IMG/VR virus record: IMGVR_UViG_3300014494_000005
Coordinates: 124,001 to 188,000 of that record
Length of the DNA: 64,000 bases
Direction: 5' to 3' (one strand)
Shown: piece after piece, positions 5,398 to 14,089 of the stretch
Numbering within the stretch: position 1 is the stretch's first letter
How the letters are laid out: each line of letters opens with the position of its first letter
Position numbers and translations under genes: made by a program
Notes under the pieces: model-generated
What the model was told of the DNA's origin: nothing
Database searches by the model: none
Seen by the model: the letters and a program-made list of their open reading frames with translations, nothing else

Positions 5398-6504
5398 TTA
5401 TAAAGTAAATTTTTCTTGCTTTCTAGCTTTTTTTCTCAATTCGTTAACTTCTCTATAAGCATTAGGGTCAAATTTTTCTCTTTTAACTATACTTACAAGA
5501 TGATTAAATTCATTTTCAGTAATCACTTGACCAACATAACTATTATTAGTTTCTTTTAAAACATAAGATTTTGGTGCTTTTGCAAAAGTTGATTGTCCTT
5601 CTGTATCAAGAGTTGCATCAAAAGTAAGTTCAAGTAGTTCTTGAATCTTTTCCTGAACATTAGCTGTCATATTCTGTTTTGTTTTCTTTAATGCTTTTTC
5701 AAGTAAATCAACAATATTTTCTTGATGAGTTTTTTTCATTTCATTATATGTTGAAGTAAATTCTTTTCCAGAACTTTTCTTCTTAATTTCAGAAATGATA
5801 GCCAAAGAACCATAACAGTCACGAATCATCAAATCCCATACCTGTTCAGCATATGTGAATGAAGGAAATTTGTCTATTGCAACAATTTCACCATCTATTA
5901 AAACAATAATACCAATAAGATTACGTGGACGTTCAAAATGTGCAATAAACTGTTCAAGTTTCTTATCATATTTTTCGAAATATACATTCAAGTAATTACC
6001 TGTACCAGATTGAGTATCACTACCCAATTTCTGAATAGCAGGATAAATTCTTGAATAACCACCTGTTTGTCCAATTGTATCAAATAACATTTCACGCATT
6101 GATACGGGTATCATACGAAATTCATTAGTTCCACAAAAATAACCTGTTTGTCCACCTTGTACACAACCTGCATCATGATAAGTGGTATTTGCATATTTTT
6201 CCAAATAACCCGCCTTTATCATACCATGATTTTGAGCACTTTGTTTAGTCATAACAGCCATTTGAGTAGGTACAATAACTTCTTTATTTTCTTTATTAGT
6301 AAAACTAATTTGACCATAAGTTTGATTACCTGCTTGAAGCGAAGTTAATGGATTCGCAAATCTAGTATCCAATGAGTTTTCTTCATCAGTTGTCAATGTT
6401 ATTATTGACATATTCATAATAGATTGAATAATAATATTTCCATTTGAATCTTTATGTGGTCTACATCCCTTTAAAAGTTCAGTAAATTCTCTTTGATTAT
6501 TCAT
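5398..6504 (-). CDS. ARPP-1 / DUF6569-like protein
   Basis: 368 aa; KQSAQNH...GCVQGGQ and GIIVLIDGEIVAIDKF resemble the family's KQNR...CVEQGRW and G....I.G.....D.F motifs (recognised by eye). Confidence 0.6.
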   Translation of the reverse strand: MNNQREFTELLKGCRPHKDSNGNIIIQSIMNMSIITLTTDEENSLDTRFANPLTSLQAGNQTYGQISFTNKENKEVIVPTQMAVMTKQSAQNHGMIKAGYLEKYANTTYHDAGCVQGGQTGYFCGTNEFRMIPVSMREMLFDTIGQTGGYSRIYPAIQKLGSDTQSGTGNYLNVYFEKYDKKLEQFIAHFERPRNLIGIIVLIDGEIVAIDKFPSFTYAEQVWDLMIRDCYGSLAIISEIKKKSSGKEFTSTYNEMKKTHQENIVDLLEKALKKTKQNMTANVQEKIQELLELTFDATLDTEGQSTFAKAPKSYVLKETNNSYVGQVITENEFNHLVSIVKREKFDPNAYREVNELRKKARKQEKFTL

Positions 6505-7067
6505 AATTTTTTAATTTTAATGTTATTAATTTTACATTCGTTTAAATATGCCTCATATGCTAATTTTTCATTCGAATATCTACCAATATATTTAATCTTT
6601 CCATTAATTGTAATTCTACTAACCCAAGGATTAGTTTTATCGTTTGGAGAAAATGAAACTCCAATATAATTAGAACTACTTTTCATTTTCTGTCTTGCAT
6701 GATGAGTATTTTCTCTTGCAGTACACCATTCTAAATTATTTAATATATTATCTTTTTTATTACCATTTTTATGATTAATTTGTTTATAATTAAATGGATT
6801 TAAAAGAAATGCATTTGCTACTAATTTATGTACTAAATATGCTTTATTAATACCTTTCTTACCTAATGAAACCATTAAATATCCACCATTTATTTGATAT
6901 GTATTTTTCAATGAACCTTTTAATTTTCGTTTAACACCCATTTTATTTATCACAAATCTATCAACACTTCTTAATCTACCAAAATTACTTATTTGATAAT
7001 ATCCTTCATAATCAATAACATCCTTCCATTTTTCAAATAAAAATAATTTTAATTTATCAAGTATCAT
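6501..7067 (-). CDS. NUMOD4-HNH(-AP2) homing endonuclease
   Basis: WKDVIDYEGYYQISNFGRLRS (NUMOD4); VHKLVA..F...INHKNGNKKDN..NLEWCT..EN (HNH); YIGVS...W...I...YIGRY (AP2-like). Confidence 0.9.
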   Translation of the reverse strand: MILDKLKLFLFEKWKDVIDYEGYYQISNFGRLRSVDRFVINKMGVKRKLKGSLKNTYQINGGYLMVSLGKKGINKAYLVHKLVANAFLLNPFNYKQINHKNGNKKDNILNNLEWCTARENTHHARQKMKSSSNYIGVSFSPNDKTNPWVSRITINGKIKYIGRYSNEKLAYEAYLNECKINNIKIKKL

Positions 7068-7075
7068 ACAAATTA

Positions 7076-8710
7076 TTAATCGTTTATATTAATTTTTTTA
7101 ATTCTTTTAACAGGTGCTGCTTCAAGAGCCAATACCTGATTTTCCAACCAACGTTTTGTATCAATTTCAAGCAATCTTGCATTGATTTGAGGCTGTAATG
7201 CGACTGGATTATTTATTGCCATTGTGACAACACCTTCACCCAATTTTCTTACATTAGCACCCATTTCAGCACTTGTAATTGGTGATATTTGGAACATTGG
7301 AATATTCCTACCACTTTCTGCTTTCCAAATTGAAATAACTTCATTAGTCAATCCATCATAAGCATTTTCATAACCATCTGTTAAAATAAAAATTGCATCA
7401 TATGGTTTTAAAGAATTTTCTTCTTTTAACAAATCAATAAATGATGTTGCCAAATCAGTAATTTCACCTCTAGTATTTACTCTGTTAGATTCTTTTGCTG
7501 AAGCAGTTAGAACCAATGCAGTAAAATCTGCAATAGCCATTGGTGTATTTTTTGATTCATTTTTATCACCAGTCATAGATACACTTTTATCGACAATAAC
7601 ACCAATATTCTGGTAAAAGAATCCCTGAATTTTTTTCTTTTGTGCAAGTTTTACAATTGCTGACCTAATTTCGTCAGTAAAACCATTTTCATAACCAGTT
7701 TTGTAAAGTGCAAGAAAATCAGTTGCTTTTTCCAAATCAACAGTTTTTTCAACACCCAACTTTGCAGTTGATTTGGTTTGACGAACCTGCTGATTTACAG
7801 AAGTAACTTCAACATTCTTACGAATAAGTGCTTTTGTTGCTTCTTTCTGAATATCAGTTGACCACATTGAATGATATTGTGGATGTTTTACACTTGAAAT
7901 TAAACCAAGTAAAACTTCTTCTGGTACATTTTTAATACCAGTAATATCAATTTTTGCTTTCTGATATTCACTTAAAAGAGGAAATTCAGTTGCATTATAT
8001 GCTACGCCACTATCTTTTTTAAATAAAAATAATAACAATTTGAATGCTTTAATTGAATCACCATTGAAATATTTCAATATACATTCATTTACAATACTCA
8101 TTTCTTTTTCACTTCCAAGCAAAGTTGCTCCATTAATATTTATTTGTTTTTGAGCAATTGAAAGTAATATTGATGTTTTCTTAACACCATATGCATGCCT
8201 AAGTACTTCAGCAATTTTATTACGATATTTCATTGAATAGAATTCAAGATTTGCTTGACCCCAAATAAAACCAAGCATAATTTTTCTTGTTCTTTCATTG
8301 TTTACTTTTTCATTCTTCAAATCAATGAAAAGACGTAATACATATGGTAAACCATTTTCGCCAAGATTGTTTAATGCAGAAAGTACTGCCTTATCACTTA
8401 AACCATTATCATACCAATCAATTGGATTAACAATATTACATGCTCCACCCCTTAAAGTATTTTTGAATTCATTCAAAAGTACTTCAGAAACAAATCTACC
8501 AGTAGCTCCTTTTTGACTTGCTATAATCAATGGGAGTTCCTTTGAAAGTTTATACAGGTTCTTTATTTGACCCTGAATTGCTTTCATTTGTTCGTCTTTA
8601 CTGTGATAGTAAGTTGCTGAACTTTTACTACCAGATGCAATAGTAAGACCATCAATTAATGATTGCTTAACTGTTGCCAACATTTTCTGTGTTAATACCA
8701 AATTTTCCAT
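7076..8710 (-). CDS. Divergent Ro60/TROVE-like RNA-binding protein with C-terminal vWA domain
   Basis: MIDAS VDKSVSM, TDLA, IFILTDGYEN; N-terminal SGSKSSATYY and MKYRNK...VLRHAY echo Ro60 GxxxGTYY and KYxxR..DLLRLxH; likely start MENL at 8710 (8770 overlaps upstream gene). Confidence 0.65.
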   Translation of the reverse strand: MENLVLTQKMLATVKQSLIDGLTIASGSKSSATYYHSKDEQMKAIQGQIKNLYKLSKELPLIIASQKGATGRFVSEVLLNEFKNTLRGGACNIVNPIDWYDNGLSDKAVLSALNNLGENGLPYVLRLFIDLKNEKVNNERTRKIMLGFIWGQANLEFYSMKYRNKIAEVLRHAYGVKKTSILLSIAQKQININGATLLGSEKEMSIVNECILKYFNGDSIKAFKLLLFLFKKDSGVAYNATEFPLLSEYQKAKIDITGIKNVPEEVLLGLISSVKHPQYHSMWSTDIQKEATKALIRKNVEVTSVNQQVRQTKSTAKLGVEKTVDLEKATDFLALYKTGYENGFTDEIRSAIVKLAQKKKIQGFFYQNIGVIVDKSVSMTGDKNESKNTPMAIADFTALVLTASAKESNRVNTRGEITDLATSFIDLLKEENSLKPYDAIFILTDGYENAYDGLTNEVISIWKAESGRNIPMFQISPITSAEMGANVRKLGEGVVTMAINNPVALQPQINARLLEIDTKRWLENQVLALEAAPVKRIKKININD

Positions 8711-8720
8711 AATATATAAT

Positions 8721-9551
8721 TTATTTATTAAGTGCAAGTTGAATTTTCTTTGATTTTTCAACAAAATCACGTAATCTATTTGTTACATTTTTACTCATTT
8801 CATCAGTAAGATGACCACCCTTTGCCATAAGCATTGTTTCAGCAACTACCGCAATACCTTCTAATATTATTGCTTGGTCATGTTGCATTTCATCAATCCT
8901 CATTTTCAGTTCCAAATAATCCTCAGAAACATTTTGTTCAGGATAAAACGCTTGATTTAACCATTTTAATCCTTCTTCACCAACCATAATACGTTTTATA
9001 TATTTGTTACTTTCTAATGGTTCGCATGTAAAATAACCTTTATTAATAAATTCTGGAAAAGGTTTATTATGTTCATCAAGAATTCCTCTCAAACGTAATT
9101 GTTCATAAATTTTATATCTTCCGGTCTTACAATTACTATTATTCTTCAAAACATTTGTTGCTTCACTTAAAGAAAAAACAATTTTTCTTATTTTTTCTTG
9201 TGTTGCAGTAATTCCATATTTGAACAACTCTTTTATTCTGTCATTACACCAAAAATAAAATTCTGGTGAAAGCCACTGTGCAAAAATTAAAGCAATATCT
9301 TCATGTATCCAAGTTCCTTGTGCAGATTTATCATTACCACCCTGCCTAATCATCACTAAATCAGCCGTATTGATATTCTTCAACTCGGCATATTTAGCAA
9401 TAATTCTTTGTGCAGTATCAGTTTTTAACCAAAAATTTGGTTTAACATCAAAAAGATTTGCCATTTCCGTGGCATTTATCATAACATTACTGCCTGTGAG
9501 AAATGAAATTTCATTTCCTTCAAATTCAAATTTTTTAATTTCTTCTTTCAT
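8721..9551 (-). CDS. KilA-N domain DNA-binding protein with antirepressor (ANT/KilAC-like) domain
   Basis: INATEMA...GTWIHEDIALIFAQWLSPEF; GRYKIYEQLRLRGIL..P..EFINKGYF..GEEGLKWL. Confidence 0.85.
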   Translation of the reverse strand: MKEEIKKFEFEGNEISFLTGSNVMINATEMANLFDVKPNFWLKTDTAQRIIAKYAELKNINTADLVMIRQGGNDKSAQGTWIHEDIALIFAQWLSPEFYFWCNDRIKELFKYGITATQEKIRKIVFSLSEATNVLKNNSNCKTGRYKIYEQLRLRGILDEHNKPFPEFINKGYFTCEPLESNKYIKRIMVGEEGLKWLNQAFYPEQNVSEDYLELKMRIDEMQHDQAIILEGIAVVAETMLMAKGGHLTDEMSKNVTNRLRDFVEKSKKIQLALNK

Positions 9552-9603
9552 GATATTTTAAATTGAATTTTTATATTATCAAAATCTAATTAATTTTTGA
9601 TGC

Positions 9604-9634
9604 CAAATATATAAAAAGTTTATTTAAAATCCAA
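9604..9634 (-). promoter_or_regulatory. Bacteroidota-type promoter for the KilA-N / Ro-like / HNH / ARPP operon
   Basis: Minus strand TTG (9632-34), 20 nt, TATATTTG (9604-11). Confidence 0.7.
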
Positions 9635-9676
9635 CTATTATACCAAAAGAATATCAAAATATTACAAAAAACAAAA

Positions 9677-9723
9677 AAATGGGCAAGTATTGATTAATTT
9701 CTTAATCAAATCCCCGCCCATTT
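9677..9723 (-). terminator. Terminator-like hairpin closing the ncRNA array
   Basis: AAATGGGC/GCCCATTT outer and TTGATTAA/TTAATCAA inner stems, followed by a T-run on the minus strand. Confidence 0.65.
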
Positions 9724-9755
9724 CTATTTTAGAAAAACACTTCTTTCAAATAAGA

Positions 9756-9847
9756 GAAGAAGTTTAGTTGTAATTTGGTAAGTTTGTCCCCTCTCTCACG
9801 AAGGGGATTTCATTTTTACAATTTACTGTATTCACAACAAGTTCTTC
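9756..9847 (-). ncRNA. Y-RNA-like structured RNA C (conserved stem + TCCCCT/AGGGGA hairpin)
   Basis: GAAGAA/TTCTTC and GTTGTGA/TTACAAC stems; motif AAGAACTTGTTGTGAATACAGTA shared with neighbours. Confidence 0.7.
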
Positions 9848-10013
9848 AGTATTCCTTTTTTAGAAAAAAAAGCACTTCTGCTCGAAAAACCATTTTTAAC
9901 CAATTAAATGTTAGGTGATATAATTTGTTTTTGTAAAAAACTCTGATATCAACAACTAAAAACTTGCGGGTTTAATTTGTTATTATTAACAACTTTTTAC
10001 CGCTTTATAACTT

Positions 10014-10158
10014 AGGGAACAATTTTAAAGTATTTGTTGTTTTTGTTTTGCAAGTTTAACTGACTTGTGACTTAACCAGCTTGTCTAATTATTCAATTTT
10101 GGCGAATAATGATGGACTCGAACCATCGAAATTACTGTAAACACTTTACGTTTTCCCT
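10014..10158 (-). ncRNA. Y-RNA-like RNA B containing a circularly permuted tRNA-like domain (YrlA-like)
   Basis: AGGGAA/TTCCCT and TAAAGTGTTT/AAATACTTTA stems enclose T arm GATGG-TTCGAGT-CCATC, acceptor ATTATTC-GCCA-AAATT-GAATAAT, D arm GAC-AAGCTGGTTAA-GTC, anticodon arm CAAGT-CAGTTAA-ACTTG. Confidence 0.8.
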
Positions 10159-10196
10159 TTGTACTATTATGCAATTATATATCGCATTTAAATTTG

Positions 10197-10333
10197 TGGG
10201 GAGAGCAGGATTTGAACCTGCACATCATTGTTTTAACGACAATTGCTTTACCTTTTACTGAAAATACAATCAGTTCTCTCTGTTAAGAGAGCAGTGAGAT
10301 AGTATTTTTTGTTTTTTATTTTGCTATCTCCCC
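10197..10333 (-). ncRNA. tRNA-like RNA D with ~65-70 nt D-loop insertion carrying the shared stem motif
   Basis: Acceptor GGGGAGA/TCTCCCC, T arm GCAGG-TTCAAAT-CCTGC, anticodon arm ATTGT-CGTTAAA-ACAAT; insert AATACTATC..CTCTCT-TAAC-AGAGAG-AACTGATTGTATTTTCAGTA. Confidence 0.8.
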
Positions 10334-10359
10334 ATATATTTTAAAGAACTTTAAAAATT

Positions 10360-10448
10360 AGAAGAAATTTGTTAGTATTGTTTTTCTGCCGTCACTCATG
10401 GACGGCATACATTATTTTTCAACTGCTGTAAACACTATCAGTTCTTCT
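10360..10448 (-). ncRNA. Y-RNA-like structured RNA A (conserved stem + TGCCGTC/GACGGCA hairpin)
   Basis: AGAAGAA/TTCTTCT and TAGTGTT/AATACTA stems; motif AAGAACTGATAGTGTTTACAGCA. Confidence 0.7.
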
Positions 10449-10525
10449 CATTTTGATTAAGTTGGCGCAGTCTTCTTTTGTGACTTACTTTCAACGGAGT
10501 GTATGCCGTGACCTCTTAATCTTTG

Positions 10526-10597
10526 TAGCGGGAGAGGGACTTGAACCCCCGACCTTTTGGTTATGAGCCAAACGAGATGCCTCTTCTCCACCCCGCA
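10526..10597 (-). tRNA. tRNA-Met(CAT), initiator-like
   Basis: TGCGGGGTGGAGAAGAGGCATCTCGTTTGG-CTCATAA-CCAAAAGGTCGGGGG-TTCAAGT-CCCTCTCCCGCTA; T1:T72 mismatch; CCA not encoded. Confidence 0.92.
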
Positions 10598-10644
10598 ATA
10601 TACTTTTTAATCTTTTTAAAGAACGTTATATCATTTTGACGATG

Positions 10645-10675
10645 CAAATCTATAACACATTTTTTAATTGTGCAA
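10645..10675 (-). promoter_or_regulatory. Bacteroidota-type promoter for the tRNA/ncRNA array
   Basis: Minus strand TTG (10673-75), 20 nt, TAGATTTG (10645-52); GTATTTAT motif also at 10721-28. Confidence 0.7.
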
Positions 10676-10768
10676 GTTTTTTTCAAAAAAAATAAAAAAT
10701 ATTTTACAACGTCTGGAAAAATAAATACGTAGAAATTTCAAAAAAGTTATTGTTTTTTATAAAATATT

Positions 10769-13700
10769 TTAATCATCTTTTATAACTCTCTGATTTTGAC
10801 GTGCTTTATTTAAAATATTAAATACATTTTTTTCATTTTCTTGTGGCTCATCAGGGTCAATTAATAATTTATTTTCCAATTCTTTTATATTAATATTTTT
10901 ATTTGTTCTTTCAATTAATGGTTTTATTGTTAAATTTTCTTCTTTAATCTCACGATTTTTTTCAACAATATTATTATCAATTTCTTTAACAAAAACTCCC
11001 GGTGGAACAAATTTAGTTAAATCTAATGATTTTTTAATATCTTCTAATTTTACTTCTGGTTGATTAATAATTTCATTAATTGTACTACCTGATTCACCAT
11101 TCCATTCAAATGGTTCTTTTTTTTCATCCCTTTTTATTTGTTCTTCATGAAATATTACTTCAGGATGAATTATTTCTTCATTTAATTCTTCAACCACACC
11201 ATTAATTTCCAGTATTGCTTCGTTGGCAATATCAATTATTTGTTTAATTTCATTTTGATTTAAATCTATTCTTGTAGTACTAATATGAATATTTTCTATT
11301 TGTTTAACAGGAACACCATGTATCTCACCTTCAATCTCTCTTCTCATTTGTTCAATAAAATCACTACTTTCAGCTTTAATCGGTTCGGTCTTAACAATAG
11401 GTTCTTCTTTTTTTACAATAGGTTCGTCAGTATTTGTTTTTATTACAGTTTCATTTTCTTTTACTGTATTTTGTTCAATTTCAAATTCAGAATTGTTTTG
11501 CAATAATCTATTAATTTCAGTAGAAGATAAATTTACAACATCAACAGCATTTTTAGAATCTTCAGCAAGTTGACTAACAACAACATGCATTTTATTTGCA
11601 GTACTTTCAACTTTATTTACATCATTTTCATCGTAATGTTTCAGTTTATTCTTTACAGGATATTTTGAGTCAGTTATAATAATTTGCATTGTATCATTAT
11701 TAAAAATACAATCTTCAAATGTTTGTCCATCTTTTGCAAATCTTGCTTTAAGAATACTAATATTAGCAAAATTTGCATCTTGTTGTGCTGGTGTTTTAGC
11801 AACTGACATAAAAAAATGTGCTTTTTGAATTCTTTTAATATTGCCACCTGTTTGTTGTGCTCCAACAATTGCAGCACCAAAACCAGAACGATTAGTTTGA
11901 ATTGCTGACCATGCAGGTATATCAAAATCTGAAGCAAGTGCTTCAAAAGATTTTACTATTTGTAATTCAGCTTCATTTCTATCTGGTGATTTTTTATGAG
12001 ATTCAAGGCAATCAAGATAATCTATTACAAGTATATCAAATTTAAAACCATATTTTTTTTGATATCCTATCATCCAATTTTTAATATCCAACATTGTAGT
12101 ATTTTCCTGACTAAATTGTTTAATCAAAAGTCTACCTTTTCCTTCTAATGATTCTGCTTTTTCTGTTGCAATTTTAAAAACTCTTGCATTTTCATCCTCA
12201 TCATCAAGTTTACTTAATGCAGATTTTGCCCAAATAGTATAATGTTTACGTTTAATCTGTTCTTTTGTATCTTCAATTATAATTTGTGCAACATTTTTTT
12301 CTTGTTCATAAGCAGTATTAGCAATAATTGTAAGTGCAGTAGTATTATGTGTTAAAATATAATCATCAATTATATATAAATGGTCATTATTTTCAACATA
12401 TATACATGTTGCATCTTCTTCATGTGAATATTCAATATTTTTTATAAATTTATTATATTCATATTTATCACGAATTACAATTCTATCAAGTTTGGTAGGT
12501 AAAGTACATGGTTTAATACCATTGTTTGGAAAACTTATGGTTAAACAATAATTTTTTTTACCTAAAACTTTTACACCATTTTTATTATACGATTTAATTT
12601 TTTCGTTAATTCTACATGTTCCACCCAATGATAATACTAATTCTCGAACATTTTTTGATAATTCTTTTGAAACTGTAGAATAAATAATTGAATGATTTTT
12701 ACCAACACCACCATCTGAATCAATTAAACCTTGTAATAATTTTTCTCTATATTCGATACAATTATATAAATAAATATTAGGAATAAATTTATTAGTTGAA
12801 TCAGTACCATATAAATTAAGTTCTGTTTCTAAAACATTTCTCGAATTTATTAATGATATTCGATATAATTTTTTATAATTTTCTTTTCTTCCTTCATATT
12901 CATGAACAATAACATTTTTTTCAAGATTACATATTTTATCAACAATAAATAAATCTGATGTTATAATGTGTGGTTGATTTTTTCTTGTTAAACATCCATC
13001 ACCCAATAATACCCCCATTATATAAGGGTCAATTTTAACCTCTAATTTATTAAATTGAATTGGTAATACATTAGGTAATCTATAATTTAAATTATTTTTT
13101 ATTTTAATATCTTCCATAATTTCAGACGTTTTTAATATCTGAAATGTATGGTCAGGAATACTTAATGTTTTACCATTTATATTAGTTTTTTGATTTCTTT
13201 GTTTAAATGAATTAACTGCCCATAAATGTTCTACATCACAATAAGATATTGTTTGGTCTGAAAAAGTAACTTTATATATTTTTCTTTTACCTTGTGGATA
13301 TACTGCTAATATTTTTTGTTTTTTTCCGTCACTACCAAAAATATAATCATTAACTTTTAATGTACCATTTTCAACCCAACCATTTGGTGTTAATACTTTA
13401 TGGCTATTTGGCAAGGCTTTTCCTACACCTGATGGTGTTAATATTAAACCAATTTCACCTTTACCAAGACCACCACCAGTCAATGAATCTATTACACCAA
13501 TTCCAGTAGGTATTGGTTGTCTAAATTCTTTTCTTAATGCTTTTTCAATACCTTCTATTACTTCTTCACAATCATCTTCATCCTCACCAATATGTGTAAT
13601 TTTTTGAAATTTTTCTTCAATTGCTGCAATAACATATTTACTTTTAATTTCACCATTTTTTACTTTATCAATAATACCTTCAGCTAATTTACGATATTCT

Positions 13701-14089
13701 TGTTGTTTAATAAAAGAATTTGTAGATTTTTGTATAACATCTCCATCATAAAGCATTTGTTTATTAATAATTCTTTCATTCCAAAGTTCAATACGTTTAA
13801 TTACAGCAAATAATGATTCTTCTTCAATTACATTATTTGGAGTTTTATATTTATTAATTGCTTGATGAATACTTTGATTTTGAAGATTTGGAACTTTCTG
13901 AAATTCTTTAAAATATTCTAAAATAATTAAAAATAATCTTCTAAGATTTGGGTCATCAAAATATTCAATTGCTATATCTGGAATTATTTTTTCTGCAAAC
14001 TCTGGTTCAACTAACAACTGCCACATAAGATGTTGTTGAAATTCAGGACCTAAATATGATGATAATGTATTTTCTGTTATATCTGCCAT
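10769..14089 (-). CDS. Replicative DNA helicase (gp41/DnaB family) with intein and acidic C-terminal extension
   Basis: IPTGIGVIDSLTGGGLGKGEIGLILTPSGVGK|TT Walker A split by intein; DILVIDYLD; WSAIQTNR; ILKARF. Confidence 0.92.
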   Translation of the reverse strand: MADITENTLSSYLGPEFQQHLMWQLLVEPEFAEKIIPDIAIEYFDDPNLRRLFLIILEYFKEFQKVPNLQNQSIHQAINKYKTPNNVIEEESLFAVIKRIELWNERIINKQMLYDGDVIQKSTNSFIKQQEYRKLAEGIIDKVKNGEIKSKYVIAAIEEKFQKITHIGEDEDDCEEVIEGIEKALRKEFRQPIPTGIGVIDSLTGGGLGKGEIGLILTPSGVGKALPNSHKVLTPNGWVENGTLKVNDYIFGSDGKKQKILAVYPQGKRKIYKVTFSDQTISYCDVEHLWAVNSFKQRNQKTNINGKTLSIPDHTFQILKTSEIMEDIKIKNNLNYRLPNVLPIQFNKLEVKIDPYIMGVLLGDGCLTRKNQPHIITSDLFIVDKICNLEKNVIVHEYEGRKENYKKLYRISLINSRNVLETELNLYGTDSTNKFIPNIYLYNCIEYREKLLQGLIDSDGGVGKNHSIIYSTVSKELSKNVRELVLSLGGTCRINEKIKSYNKNGVKVLGKKNYCLTISFPNNGIKPCTLPTKLDRIVIRDKYEYNKFIKNIEYSHEEDATCIYVENNDHLYIIDDYILTHNTTALTIIANTAYEQEKNVAQIIIEDTKEQIKRKHYTIWAKSALSKLDDEDENARVFKIATEKAESLEGKGRLLIKQFSQENTTMLDIKNWMIGYQKKYGFKFDILVIDYLDCLESHKKSPDRNEAELQIVKSFEALASDFDIPAWSAIQTNRSGFGAAIVGAQQTGGNIKRIQKAHFFMSVAKTPAQQDANFANISILKARFAKDGQTFEDCIFNNDTMQIIITDSKYPVKNKLKHYDENDVNKVESTANKMHVVVSQLAEDSKNAVDVVNLSSTEINRLLQNNSEFEIEQNTVKENETVIKTNTDEPIVKKEEPIVKTEPIKAESSDFIEQMRREIEGEIHGVPVKQIENIHISTTRIDLNQNEIKQIIDIANEAILEINGVVEELNEEIIHPEVIFHEEQIKRDEKKEPFEWNGESGSTINEIINQPEVKLEDIKKSLDLTKFVPPGVFVKEIDNNIVEKNREIKEENLTIKPLIERTNKNINIKELENKLLIDPDEPQENEKNVFNILNKARQNQRVIKDD
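12344..13417 (-). mobile_element. Class 3 (Ala1, WCT) intein with LAGLIDADG endonuclease, 358 aa
   Basis: Starts ALPNSHKVLTPNG, ends ILTHN|T; HLW (block B), ATCI (block F); VLLGDG and GLIDSDG motifs. Confidence 0.88.

Follow-up and report, generated by a model that had tools for sequence, protein, structure and literature searches.

Introduction

Y RNAs are encoded on the strand of the Ro60 gene and within 4 kb of it; they come as several paralogues and are sometimes co-transcribed with transfer RNAs (tRNAs) (PMC4201824; 10.1101/312249). Among them, YrlA has been described as resembling a tRNA in circular permutation whose acceptor stem is closed and which lacks an anticodon loop (10.1101/312249). 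Here, we analysed a permuted tRNA-like RNA on the minus strand of a 64,000-nucleotide stretch of DNA (the window) from the IMG/VR virus record IMGVR_UViG_3300014494_000005, positions 124,001 to 188,000, which an earlier note, made from the letters of the window, had described as a circularly permuted tRNA(Asn)-like domain. We propose that this RNA is a Y RNA that resembles YrlA and belongs to a divergent phage Ro60-like particle, that is, a tRNA mimic carried on a protein-binding stem, a reading to which we assign a probability of about 0.62.

YrlA is marked by its location near Ro60 on the same strand, by a stem of its 5′ and 3′ ends with the sequence GNCGAAN0-1G, by a module in the order V, T, acceptor and D, and by tRNA tertiary nucleotides with covariation of the Levitt pair (PMC4201824). 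In M. smegmatis, YrlA has a 7-base-pair (bp) acceptor stem, is cut by ribonuclease P (RNase P) and gains CCA in vivo, and the two-piece RNA stays on Rsr (PMC4201824). Phage Ro60 genes with Y-like RNAs upstream are known from mycobacteriophages, CcrColossus, Bacillus phage G and Thermus phage phiLo (PMC12135203, PMC7824862). The known bacterial and phage Y RNAs came from looking beside TROVE-annotated genes; searches guided in this way would miss the present family because its Ro60-like protein escapes Pfam.

Architecture and covariation of the permuted RNA

An exact-pattern scan returned identical copies only. Homologous loci were gathered via the flanking helicase and via a degenerate pattern of the 5′ stem, and the resulting alignment (A2) holds 53 distinct homologues from uncultured jumbo phages, among which the flanking helicase is only 43-84% identical. 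The covariance model (R1) gave 57 full-length matches of 114-154 bits. In the window, it scored 153.8 bits on the minus strand and 19.4 bits on the plus strand; because of this difference and of the conserved G-U pairs, the RNA is assigned to the minus strand. Its parts are as follows.

10015-10157, minus strand: whole permuted tRNA-like scaffold RNA (type I), 143 nucleotides (nt); covariance model R1, 153.8 bits
10153-10157, minus strand: 5′ strand of helix P1 (GGGAA), which pairs with 10015-10019 (UUCCC); 100% paired in the 53 sequences and nearly invariant
10150-10152, minus strand: invariant loop nucleotides AAC between P1 and P2
10139-10148, minus strand: 5′ strand of helix P2, which pairs with 10026-10035; 96% paired, two pairs changed on both sides
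10128-10138, minus strand: junction ACAGUAAUUUC, whose last C (10128) is equivalent to position 48; ACAG(UAA) invariant
10111-10127, minus strand: T arm with a 5-bp stem and the loop UUCGAGU; 99.2% paired, 3/5 pairs changed on both sides
10088-10110, minus strand: closed acceptor hairpin; 7/7 pairs change on both sides
10068-10087, minus strand: U8-A9, D arm with A14, G18-G19 and A21, then A26; invariant tertiary nucleotides, three D-stem pairs covary
10051-10067, minus strand: anticodon-like arm with a 5-bp stem and the 7-nt loop CAGUUAA; 5/5 pairs change on both sides
10036-10050, minus strand: A-rich junction that leads from the anticodon arm to P2; ACAA(C)AA segment conserved

Within the acceptor hairpin, the 3′ strand (10104-10110) is followed by GCCA (10100-10103), a 5-nt linker (10095-10099) and the 5′ strand (10088-10094), and the two strands form seven perfect pairs. 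The D arm proper, with its GG, spans 10085-10069, and the two closing helices are P1 (10157-10153 with 10019-10015) and P2 (10148-10139 with 10035-10026). The minimum-free-energy fold from RNAfold gives all four hairpins within the closing stem. Its energy corresponds to z = -2.5 relative to shuffles, 4/200 of which were equally good; the fold energy of a single sequence is weak evidence, and the comparative data decide. All the arms that the earlier note had delimited were recovered at the same positions on the minus strand.

In the alignment, standard pairs occupy 95.7% of the cells of paired positions, compared with 79.5% in shuffles, and 21/36 pairs changed on both sides. The covariation score was 0.417, compared with 0.124 in shuffles and at most 0.086 in slid registers. 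Both-side changes reach every helix of the tRNA body, with the counts listed above for the acceptor, anticodon and T stems and 3/4 pairs in the D stem. Outside the helices, mutual information singled out two pairs, 15:48, which is the Levitt pair, and 26:44. In the former, the combination of D-loop position 15 with the nucleotide just 5′ of the T stem is G:C in 46 sequences and A:U in 7. Because both tertiary pairs covary, the L-shaped tRNA fold, beyond the cloverleaf drawing, is under selection. Across the 53 homologues, T arm, closed acceptor, D arm and anticodon arm keep their permuted order, and these arms fold and covary as expected from the earlier description. The anticodon arm, said there to be retained with the stem in the place of the variable loop, covaries as well, and the stem joins between positions 44 and 48.

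ARAGORN called no tRNA at the permuted RNA, and the Rfam tRNA model matched it partially, with 16.2 bits; tRNA finders miss this RNA, as expected, because of its permuted order. An Rfam scan of the region gave only partial tRNA matches for the permuted RNA, and no transfer-messenger RNA (tmRNA), known ribozyme or other family was found.

Variation of the anticodon-like and acceptor loops

The anticodon-like loop is 7 nt long in all 53 homologues and takes 25 different sequences. GUU is present in 6/53; U33 is found in 39/53, and A33, as in the window, in 5. The acceptor loop varies in length from 5 to 22 nt. NCCA follows the acceptor 3′ strand in 37/53 and a discriminator G followed by CCA in 18/53, while 9/53 have a closed pentaloop without CCA. 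With these counts, and with A33 in the window, a canonical tRNA(Asn) was rejected; the Asn identity once read from the GUU anticodon and the discriminator G fails because the anticodon loop sequence varies. To judge from its sequence, the permuted RNA does not behave like a decoding tRNA, and the variable loop agrees with the suggestion of a mimic in place of a translational role. Two further points of the earlier note apply to the window but not to all homologues: the window does carry A33, proposed as a mark of non-decoding, but this is the minority state; likewise, the internal GCCA is present in the window and NCCA is frequent, but it is not universal.

Display of a stop codon in the loop was also considered and rejected, since UAA, UAG or UGA occurs in 50/53 sequences compared with 47 ± 1.8 in column-preserving shuffles, that is, from composition only. 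As a separate observation, U33-G34-U35 was never seen in the alignment, even though G34-U35 was counted 10 times behind an A, C or G in position 33. The UGU motif is what tRNA-guanine transglycosylase recognises, and it is located where colicin E5 cleaves. The missing combination is only a lead, as the counts are small and the sequences related.

A scaffold shared with paralogous RNAs

The closing stem is a scaffold common to several paralogous RNAs of one intergenic region. It is built from the 5′ and 3′ ends of the RNA and comprises P1, the internal loop with the invariant AAC, P2 and the invariant ACAG junction. A comparison of paralogue types shows covariation of P1 and P2, with AAC after P1 and (A/U)CAG after P2 being fixed. 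In the window, the scaffold was also identified in the following RNAs.

10360-10448, minus strand: paralogous scaffold RNA in which a G+C-rich hairpin replaces the tRNA-like body; R1, 31.6 bits, both model ends
9755-9848, minus strand: another paralogous scaffold RNA, whose module is also a G+C-rich hairpin; R1, 26.0 bits, both model ends, filters off
10200-10333, minus strand: tRNA-like RNA with normal acceptor ends and the scaffold inserted in the D region; Rfam tRNA, 25.2 bits, partial

The two hairpin-module RNAs are analogous to YrlB. In the RNA at 10200-10333, the acceptor ends are GGGGAGA...UCUCCCC-A, and a P2-P1 unit closed by a UAAC tetraloop lies between the acceptor 5′ strand and the D-loop GG. 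This RNA had 61 distinct nhmmer matches; based on RNAalifold analysis of 59 of them, the acceptor, the P2-like stem, the P1-like hairpin, the anticodon arm and the T arm all covary, and its anticodon-like loop also varies.

Relatives hold two to four further scaffold copies each. These take the form of a small hairpin (70-83 nt), of a G+C-rich hairpin (87-95 nt) or of a normal-topology tRNA-like unit clamped by the scaffold at its acceptor end (118-127 nt); the last type is not in the window's phage. ARAGORN called the clamped units, examples of which are L031:6766-6889, L056:7956-8080, L066:7990-8114 and L175:1355-1475, as Glu, Ile(tat), Asp(atc), selenocysteine (SeC(tca)) or Arg(cct), and the calls differ between orthologous positions. 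On tRNA bodies, the scaffold occurs in three graft topologies, the attachment site being the variable loop in the permuted RNA, the acceptor end in the clamped units and the D loop in the RNA at 10200-10333. It looks like an independent protein-docking module because its loop and junction letters are fixed, its helices covary and it is grafted on different bodies at three positions.

The Ro60-like protein

Downstream of the RNA cluster, on the same strand, lies the following gene.

7076-8710, minus strand: 544-amino-acid Ro60-like protein with a helical N-terminal domain and a C-terminal vWA domain with a MIDAS (metal-ion-dependent adhesion site) motif

Searches of Pfam, PHROGs and PDB with the sequence and with profiles were all empty for this protein. 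Its relatives gave weak matches to vWA models, and the MIDAS motif DxSxS...TDG is invariant in the protein alignment. Using hhalign, a profile of 57 relatives matched the vWA domain of a Ro60 profile built on mycobacteriophage Bxz1 gp220 with 91% probability (E = 1e-6), at the same position in equally long proteins; with a laxer alignment setting, the match was collinear over 433 columns. A shallow profile compared with a single Ro60 sequence gave no match in hhalign.

The AlphaFold2 model obtained with the alignment of relatives has a predicted local distance difference test (pLDDT) score of 90.3 and a predicted template-modelling (pTM) score of 0.88. It begins with about 360 residues that are all helical (21 helices) and ends in an alpha/beta domain. 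When this model was compared with PDB using Foldseek, the first twelve matches were all Ro60 at full length, with probability 1.00 and E = 1e-7 to 2e-3, and included those of human (9nf8, 9nep, 9nfa, 9nen), Xenopus (2i91, 1yvp, 1yvr), Deinococcus (2nvo) and Thermus phage phiLo (9kop, 9l5y); the next match was partial, with E = 0.018. A structure search of BFVD matched phage Ro-like and TROVE proteins. Based on this predicted fold, the 544-amino-acid protein is very probably a divergent Ro60-like protein. Among 50,697 GenBank phage records, only 1 has a homologue.

Linkage of the RNAs, the Ro60-like gene and ARPP-1

A gene for a protein of about 544 amino acids lies downstream of the RNA on the same strand in 46/47 assessable relatives (46/58 distinct loci); 11 of the 12 loci without it end within 1.1 kb. 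The gap between the RNA and the gene in the 46 loci is 104-1864 nt, with a median of 436. In the window, about 1.3 kb separates the RNA 3′ end from the gene downstream, and a KilA-N gene lies between them.

We also inspected distant protein homologues in other gene contexts (loci L169 and L172-L175). At L169, whose protein is 30% identical to that of the window, a 950-nt noncoding stretch upstream holds at least four RNAs with AAC-UGAUAG...ACAG scaffolds, one of which has a T arm and a closed acceptor. At L175, in the huge phage LR756500.1 (28% identity), a scaffold-clamped tRNA-like RNA was found 1.5 kb upstream. The 1.2-kb region upstream of the L173 homologue (21% identity) contains four repeats of a different 5′ motif; these repeats, at L173:2812-4001 of a 330-kb contig, start with GG(G)GCC..GUUGWUUAGAAAU and may represent a different, co-evolved scaffold.

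A further gene accompanies the system.

5398-6504, minus strand: ARPP-1 domain protein; Pfam PF20208, E = 9e-12

The ARPP-1 gene is directly 3′ of the Ro60-like gene in every case seen, including the distant loci L169-L173 (21-30% identity); the window is an exception in spacing, with an HNH gene inserted between the two. ARPP has been tied to ADP-ribose conflict systems (PMC9503650), and the ARPP-1 protein is a candidate effector of the system.

Comparison with YrlA and proposed function

The resemblance to YrlA (RF02553) pointed out in the earlier note is borne out and is strengthened by the structurally Ro60-like gene downstream on the same strand. Both RNAs have a long stem formed by the 5′ and 3′ ends, which in the phage RNA contains an internal loop and is 100% (P1) and 96% (P2) paired, and both share the order T arm, closed acceptor, D arm as well as the tRNA tertiary nucleotides and the Levitt covariation. 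Additionally, several paralogues per locus lie beside tRNA genes and upstream of a Ro60-type gene on the same strand, here within about 4 kb and with a product that is Ro60-like by predicted structure only. Unlike YrlA, the phage RNA keeps a full anticodon arm of 5 bp and 7 nt, and its stem leaves from the variable-loop position, whereas the stem of YrlA continues from the anticodon stem, with no anticodon loop (10.1101/312249). The two also differ in that the partner protein of the phage RNA is undetected by the Pfam TROVE model.

The proposal of a YrlA-like Y RNA builds on directly supported points, namely, the conserved structure of the RNA, the modularity of its scaffold, the synteny and the neighbouring protein's predicted fold, which is Ro60-like. 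The recurrence of scaffold RNAs beside 28-30%-identical protein homologues in other gene contexts also speaks for it. According to this proposal, the phage would encode a small set of Y-RNA-like noncoding RNAs with a common basal scaffold and an apical module that differs between paralogues. In the permuted RNA, the apical module is a complete L-shaped tRNA body, with its acceptor closed by a loop and the scaffold emerging at the variable-loop position. The scaffold would be the docking site of the Ro60-like protein encoded just downstream, and the docked tRNA body may recruit, occupy or gate a tRNA-recognising factor, as has been proposed for YrlA and Ro60. The 7-bp acceptor stem, which carries NCCA in most members, may be nicked by the host RNase P to yield a two-piece RNA with a CCA end, as in M. 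smegmatis YrlA. The 7-bp stem is common to both; CCA is added in the latter, whereas it is already encoded in 37/53 phage RNAs.

Several results weigh against this proposal. The Ro60-binding mark of known Y RNAs, GNCGAAN0-1G or CGAA, is not conserved, being found in 16/53 homologues and absent from the window RNA; the equivalent positions read C-G/U-N-N, and the paralogues read AACUGAUAG. Rfam RF02553 had no match in 9500-10800 at E <= 10, although the positive control, Bxz1 YrlA, scored 32.5 bits (E = 3e-5); conversely, R1 matched only the T arm of Bxz1 YrlA. Regarding the protein, Pfam TROVE (PF05731) and vWA_Ro60 (PF25045) were unmatched by it at E <= 10 and by its 57 relatives at E <= 1, and the N-terminal domain alone compared with the TROVE profile gave a non-significant E = 0.023, with reversed controls at about 0.1. 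The Foldseek TM-scores to Ro60 are modest, 0.41-0.49; nevertheless, bona fide Ro60 rings superpose poorly among themselves too (PMC12135203). Adjacency within the phage clade alone is weak evidence, because these phage genomes are highly syntenic, and the upstream noncoding region is absent at L172 (24%) and L174 (40%). As a Y RNA, the phage RNA would work like YrlA but falls outside the curated family, from which CGAA, the stem attachment and RF02553 set it apart.

Alternative explanations

Four other explanations were weighed and found less well supported than the Y RNA. The one that survives best, although unlikely, is a free-standing decoy or sponge for host defences that target tRNAs (anticodon nucleases, or tRNA-modifying or ADP-ribosylating effectors), acting without the Ro60-like protein. 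It would fit the intact tRNA body with its fast-evolving anticodon loop, the jumbo-phage setting and the conserved ARPP-1 gene nearby with its ties to ADP-ribose conflict, and the lack of U33-G34-U35 next to the ten occurrences of N-G-U with another N. A decoy should, however, mimic specific anticodon loops of the host, and conservation of this kind was not seen; the presence of the scaffold on non-tRNA modules and the tight linkage to the Ro60-like gene are also left unexplained.

It is improbable that the RNA is the precursor of a split tRNA, in which RNase P and 3′ trimming would open the loop at NCCA and the two-piece molecule would be aminoacylated and used in translation or another aminoacyl transfer. 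The perfect 7-bp acceptor stem, the retention of all tRNA tertiary nucleotides, and NCCA in 37/53 homologues even though the tRNA-Met gene of the cluster encodes no CCA are in its favour, as is the cleavage of M. smegmatis YrlA by RNase P with receipt of CCA in vivo (PMC4201824). Nevertheless, close relatives show 25 anticodon-loop sequences, U33 is missing in 14/53 including the window, nine homologues have a closed pentaloop and no CCA, and the invariant scaffold common to hairpin-only RNAs would remain without explanation.

Similarly improbable is that the scaffold serves only as a leader-trailer stem, at which RNase III or a comparable enzyme would cut to free the units of a polycistronic transcript of the tRNA region, with the adjacency of the Ro60-like gene being an inherited order. 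In relatives, the scaffold does flank ordinary-looking tRNA-like units, and the cluster begins with tRNA-Met and has all its units on one strand. Nevertheless, paralogues share the same nucleotides in the internal loop and the junction even though their helices covary, which points to sequence-specific recognition and not to a plain duplex. In addition, the scaffold of the RNA at 10333-10200 cannot be a leader-trailer pair because it is internal and closed by a loop, and scaffold RNAs are found again beside the 28-30%-identical protein homologues in other gene contexts. Finally, a functionless, decaying remnant of a tandem tRNA duplication, which would be expected to leave a tRNA 3′ half, a short spacer and a 5′ half and has been proposed as the origin of YrlA (10.1101/312249), has a negligible probability, being contradicted by the compensatory changes that the 53 sequences show in all helices and in two tertiary pairs.

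Relation to other RNAs

Among other Y RNAs, D. radiodurans Yrn1 resembles the permuted RNA in its modelled T arm, possible 5-bp anticodon arm and co-transcription with a tRNA (PMC4201824); it differs in having a 6-nt loop and no full D arm, whereas the phage RNA has a complete cloverleaf. Thermus phage phiLo also encodes Ro60 with several Y-like stem-bulge-stem RNAs (Yrl1, Yrl2) directly upstream (PMC12135203), but these are hairpins with the CGAA motif and without a tRNA-like body.

The permuted tRNA genes of Cyanidioschyzon merolae likewise place the tRNA 3′ half before the 5′ half, with a short linker after the acceptor end. Their transcripts pass through a circular intermediate by means of a splicing endonuclease and a ligase (10.1101/312249). 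They mature to decoding tRNAs, whereas the anticodon is unconserved in the phage RNA, and no bulge-helix-bulge motif is evident in P1/P2. A splicing endonuclease and ligase of this type are not known in bacteria.

Two-piece (permuted) tmRNA shows the same succession of T arm, acceptor-CCA, intervening loop and acceptor 5′ strand, and it is processed to two pieces. The phage RNA differs in having no tag reading frame and no pseudoknots; ARAGORN found no tmRNA, and the Rfam tmRNA model reached 7.8 bits elsewhere in the region. The stable RNAs C and D (species 1 and 2) of phage T4 are of similar size and lie in a phage tRNA cluster. Homology to T4 rnaC/rnaD was rejected: R1 scored the T4 region only partially and at tRNA level, and the topology of T4 rnaC is normal.

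Wider implications

If the proposed assignment holds, Ro60/Y RNA systems reach a large clade of uncultured jumbo phages. Mimicry of tRNAs can extend to a complete permuted cloverleaf. The placement of one docking stem at three sites of tRNA bodies would provide a natural experiment that bears on what the tRNA module of Y RNAs does. A wider version of the proposal, which we regard as doubtful, is that uncultured huge phages carry a hitherto overlooked and very divergent clade of Ro60 together with arrays of four to six scaffold RNAs, whose docking stem sits on tRNA bodies in the three topologies, and that the adjacent ARPP-1 enzyme is the effector. In that case, the fast-evolving anticodon loops would offer baits or substrates shaped like tRNAs in a conflict of phage and host over the cleavage, modification or ADP-ribosylation of tRNAs, and the complex would be a new kind of Ro-type particle, with an effector unlike that of the known Ro60-Y RNA-PNPase machine.

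Genomic setting

The window has a G+C content of 26% and encodes a tail sheath, a T4-type baseplate, a UvsX-like recombinase, a DnaB helicase with a LAGLIDADG intein, homing endonucleases and glycosyltransferases. Because of this gene content and of identical copies of the locus on IMG/VR contigs of up to 349 kb, the window is taken as one piece of the genome of an uncultured jumbo myophage. The permuted RNA lies on the minus strand within a 1.2-kb noncoding region (9552-10768) bounded by the helicase gene (10769-14089) and the KilA-N gene (8721-9551), and the neighbouring genes and a canonical tRNA-Met are all on the same strand as the RNA. The remaining features of the neighbourhood are as follows.

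10526-10597, minus strand: canonical tRNA-Met at the head of the RNA cluster, CCA not encoded; ARAGORN and Rfam, 56.3 bits
8721-9551, minus strand: KilA-N gene, inserted between the RNA cluster and the Ro60-like gene
6501-7067, minus strand: NUMOD4/HNH endonuclease gene, inserted between the Ro60-like gene and the ARPP-1 gene

In most relatives, the RNA cluster, the Ro60-like gene and the ARPP-1 gene are directly adjacent, without the KilA-N and HNH inserts. The DnaB-type helicase (10769-14089, minus strand) has 1106 amino acids and LAGLIDADG / Hom_end domains, whereas the median in relatives is about 690 amino acids, which indicates that it carries an intein found in only some of them.

A search of GenBank phages for close relatives of the RNAs gave tRNA-Met matches only. 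In bacterial genomes, the RNA is present only on short contigs in Bacteroidota bins, which are probably phage DNA. A long-range pairing of 10509-10500 with 10411-10402 was considered and rejected, since a 10-nt complementarity is approximately at chance level for 1.2 kb. The rest of the intergenic region, 10449-10524 and 9850-10013 (minus strand), shows 65-75% identity in relatives and contains hairpins.

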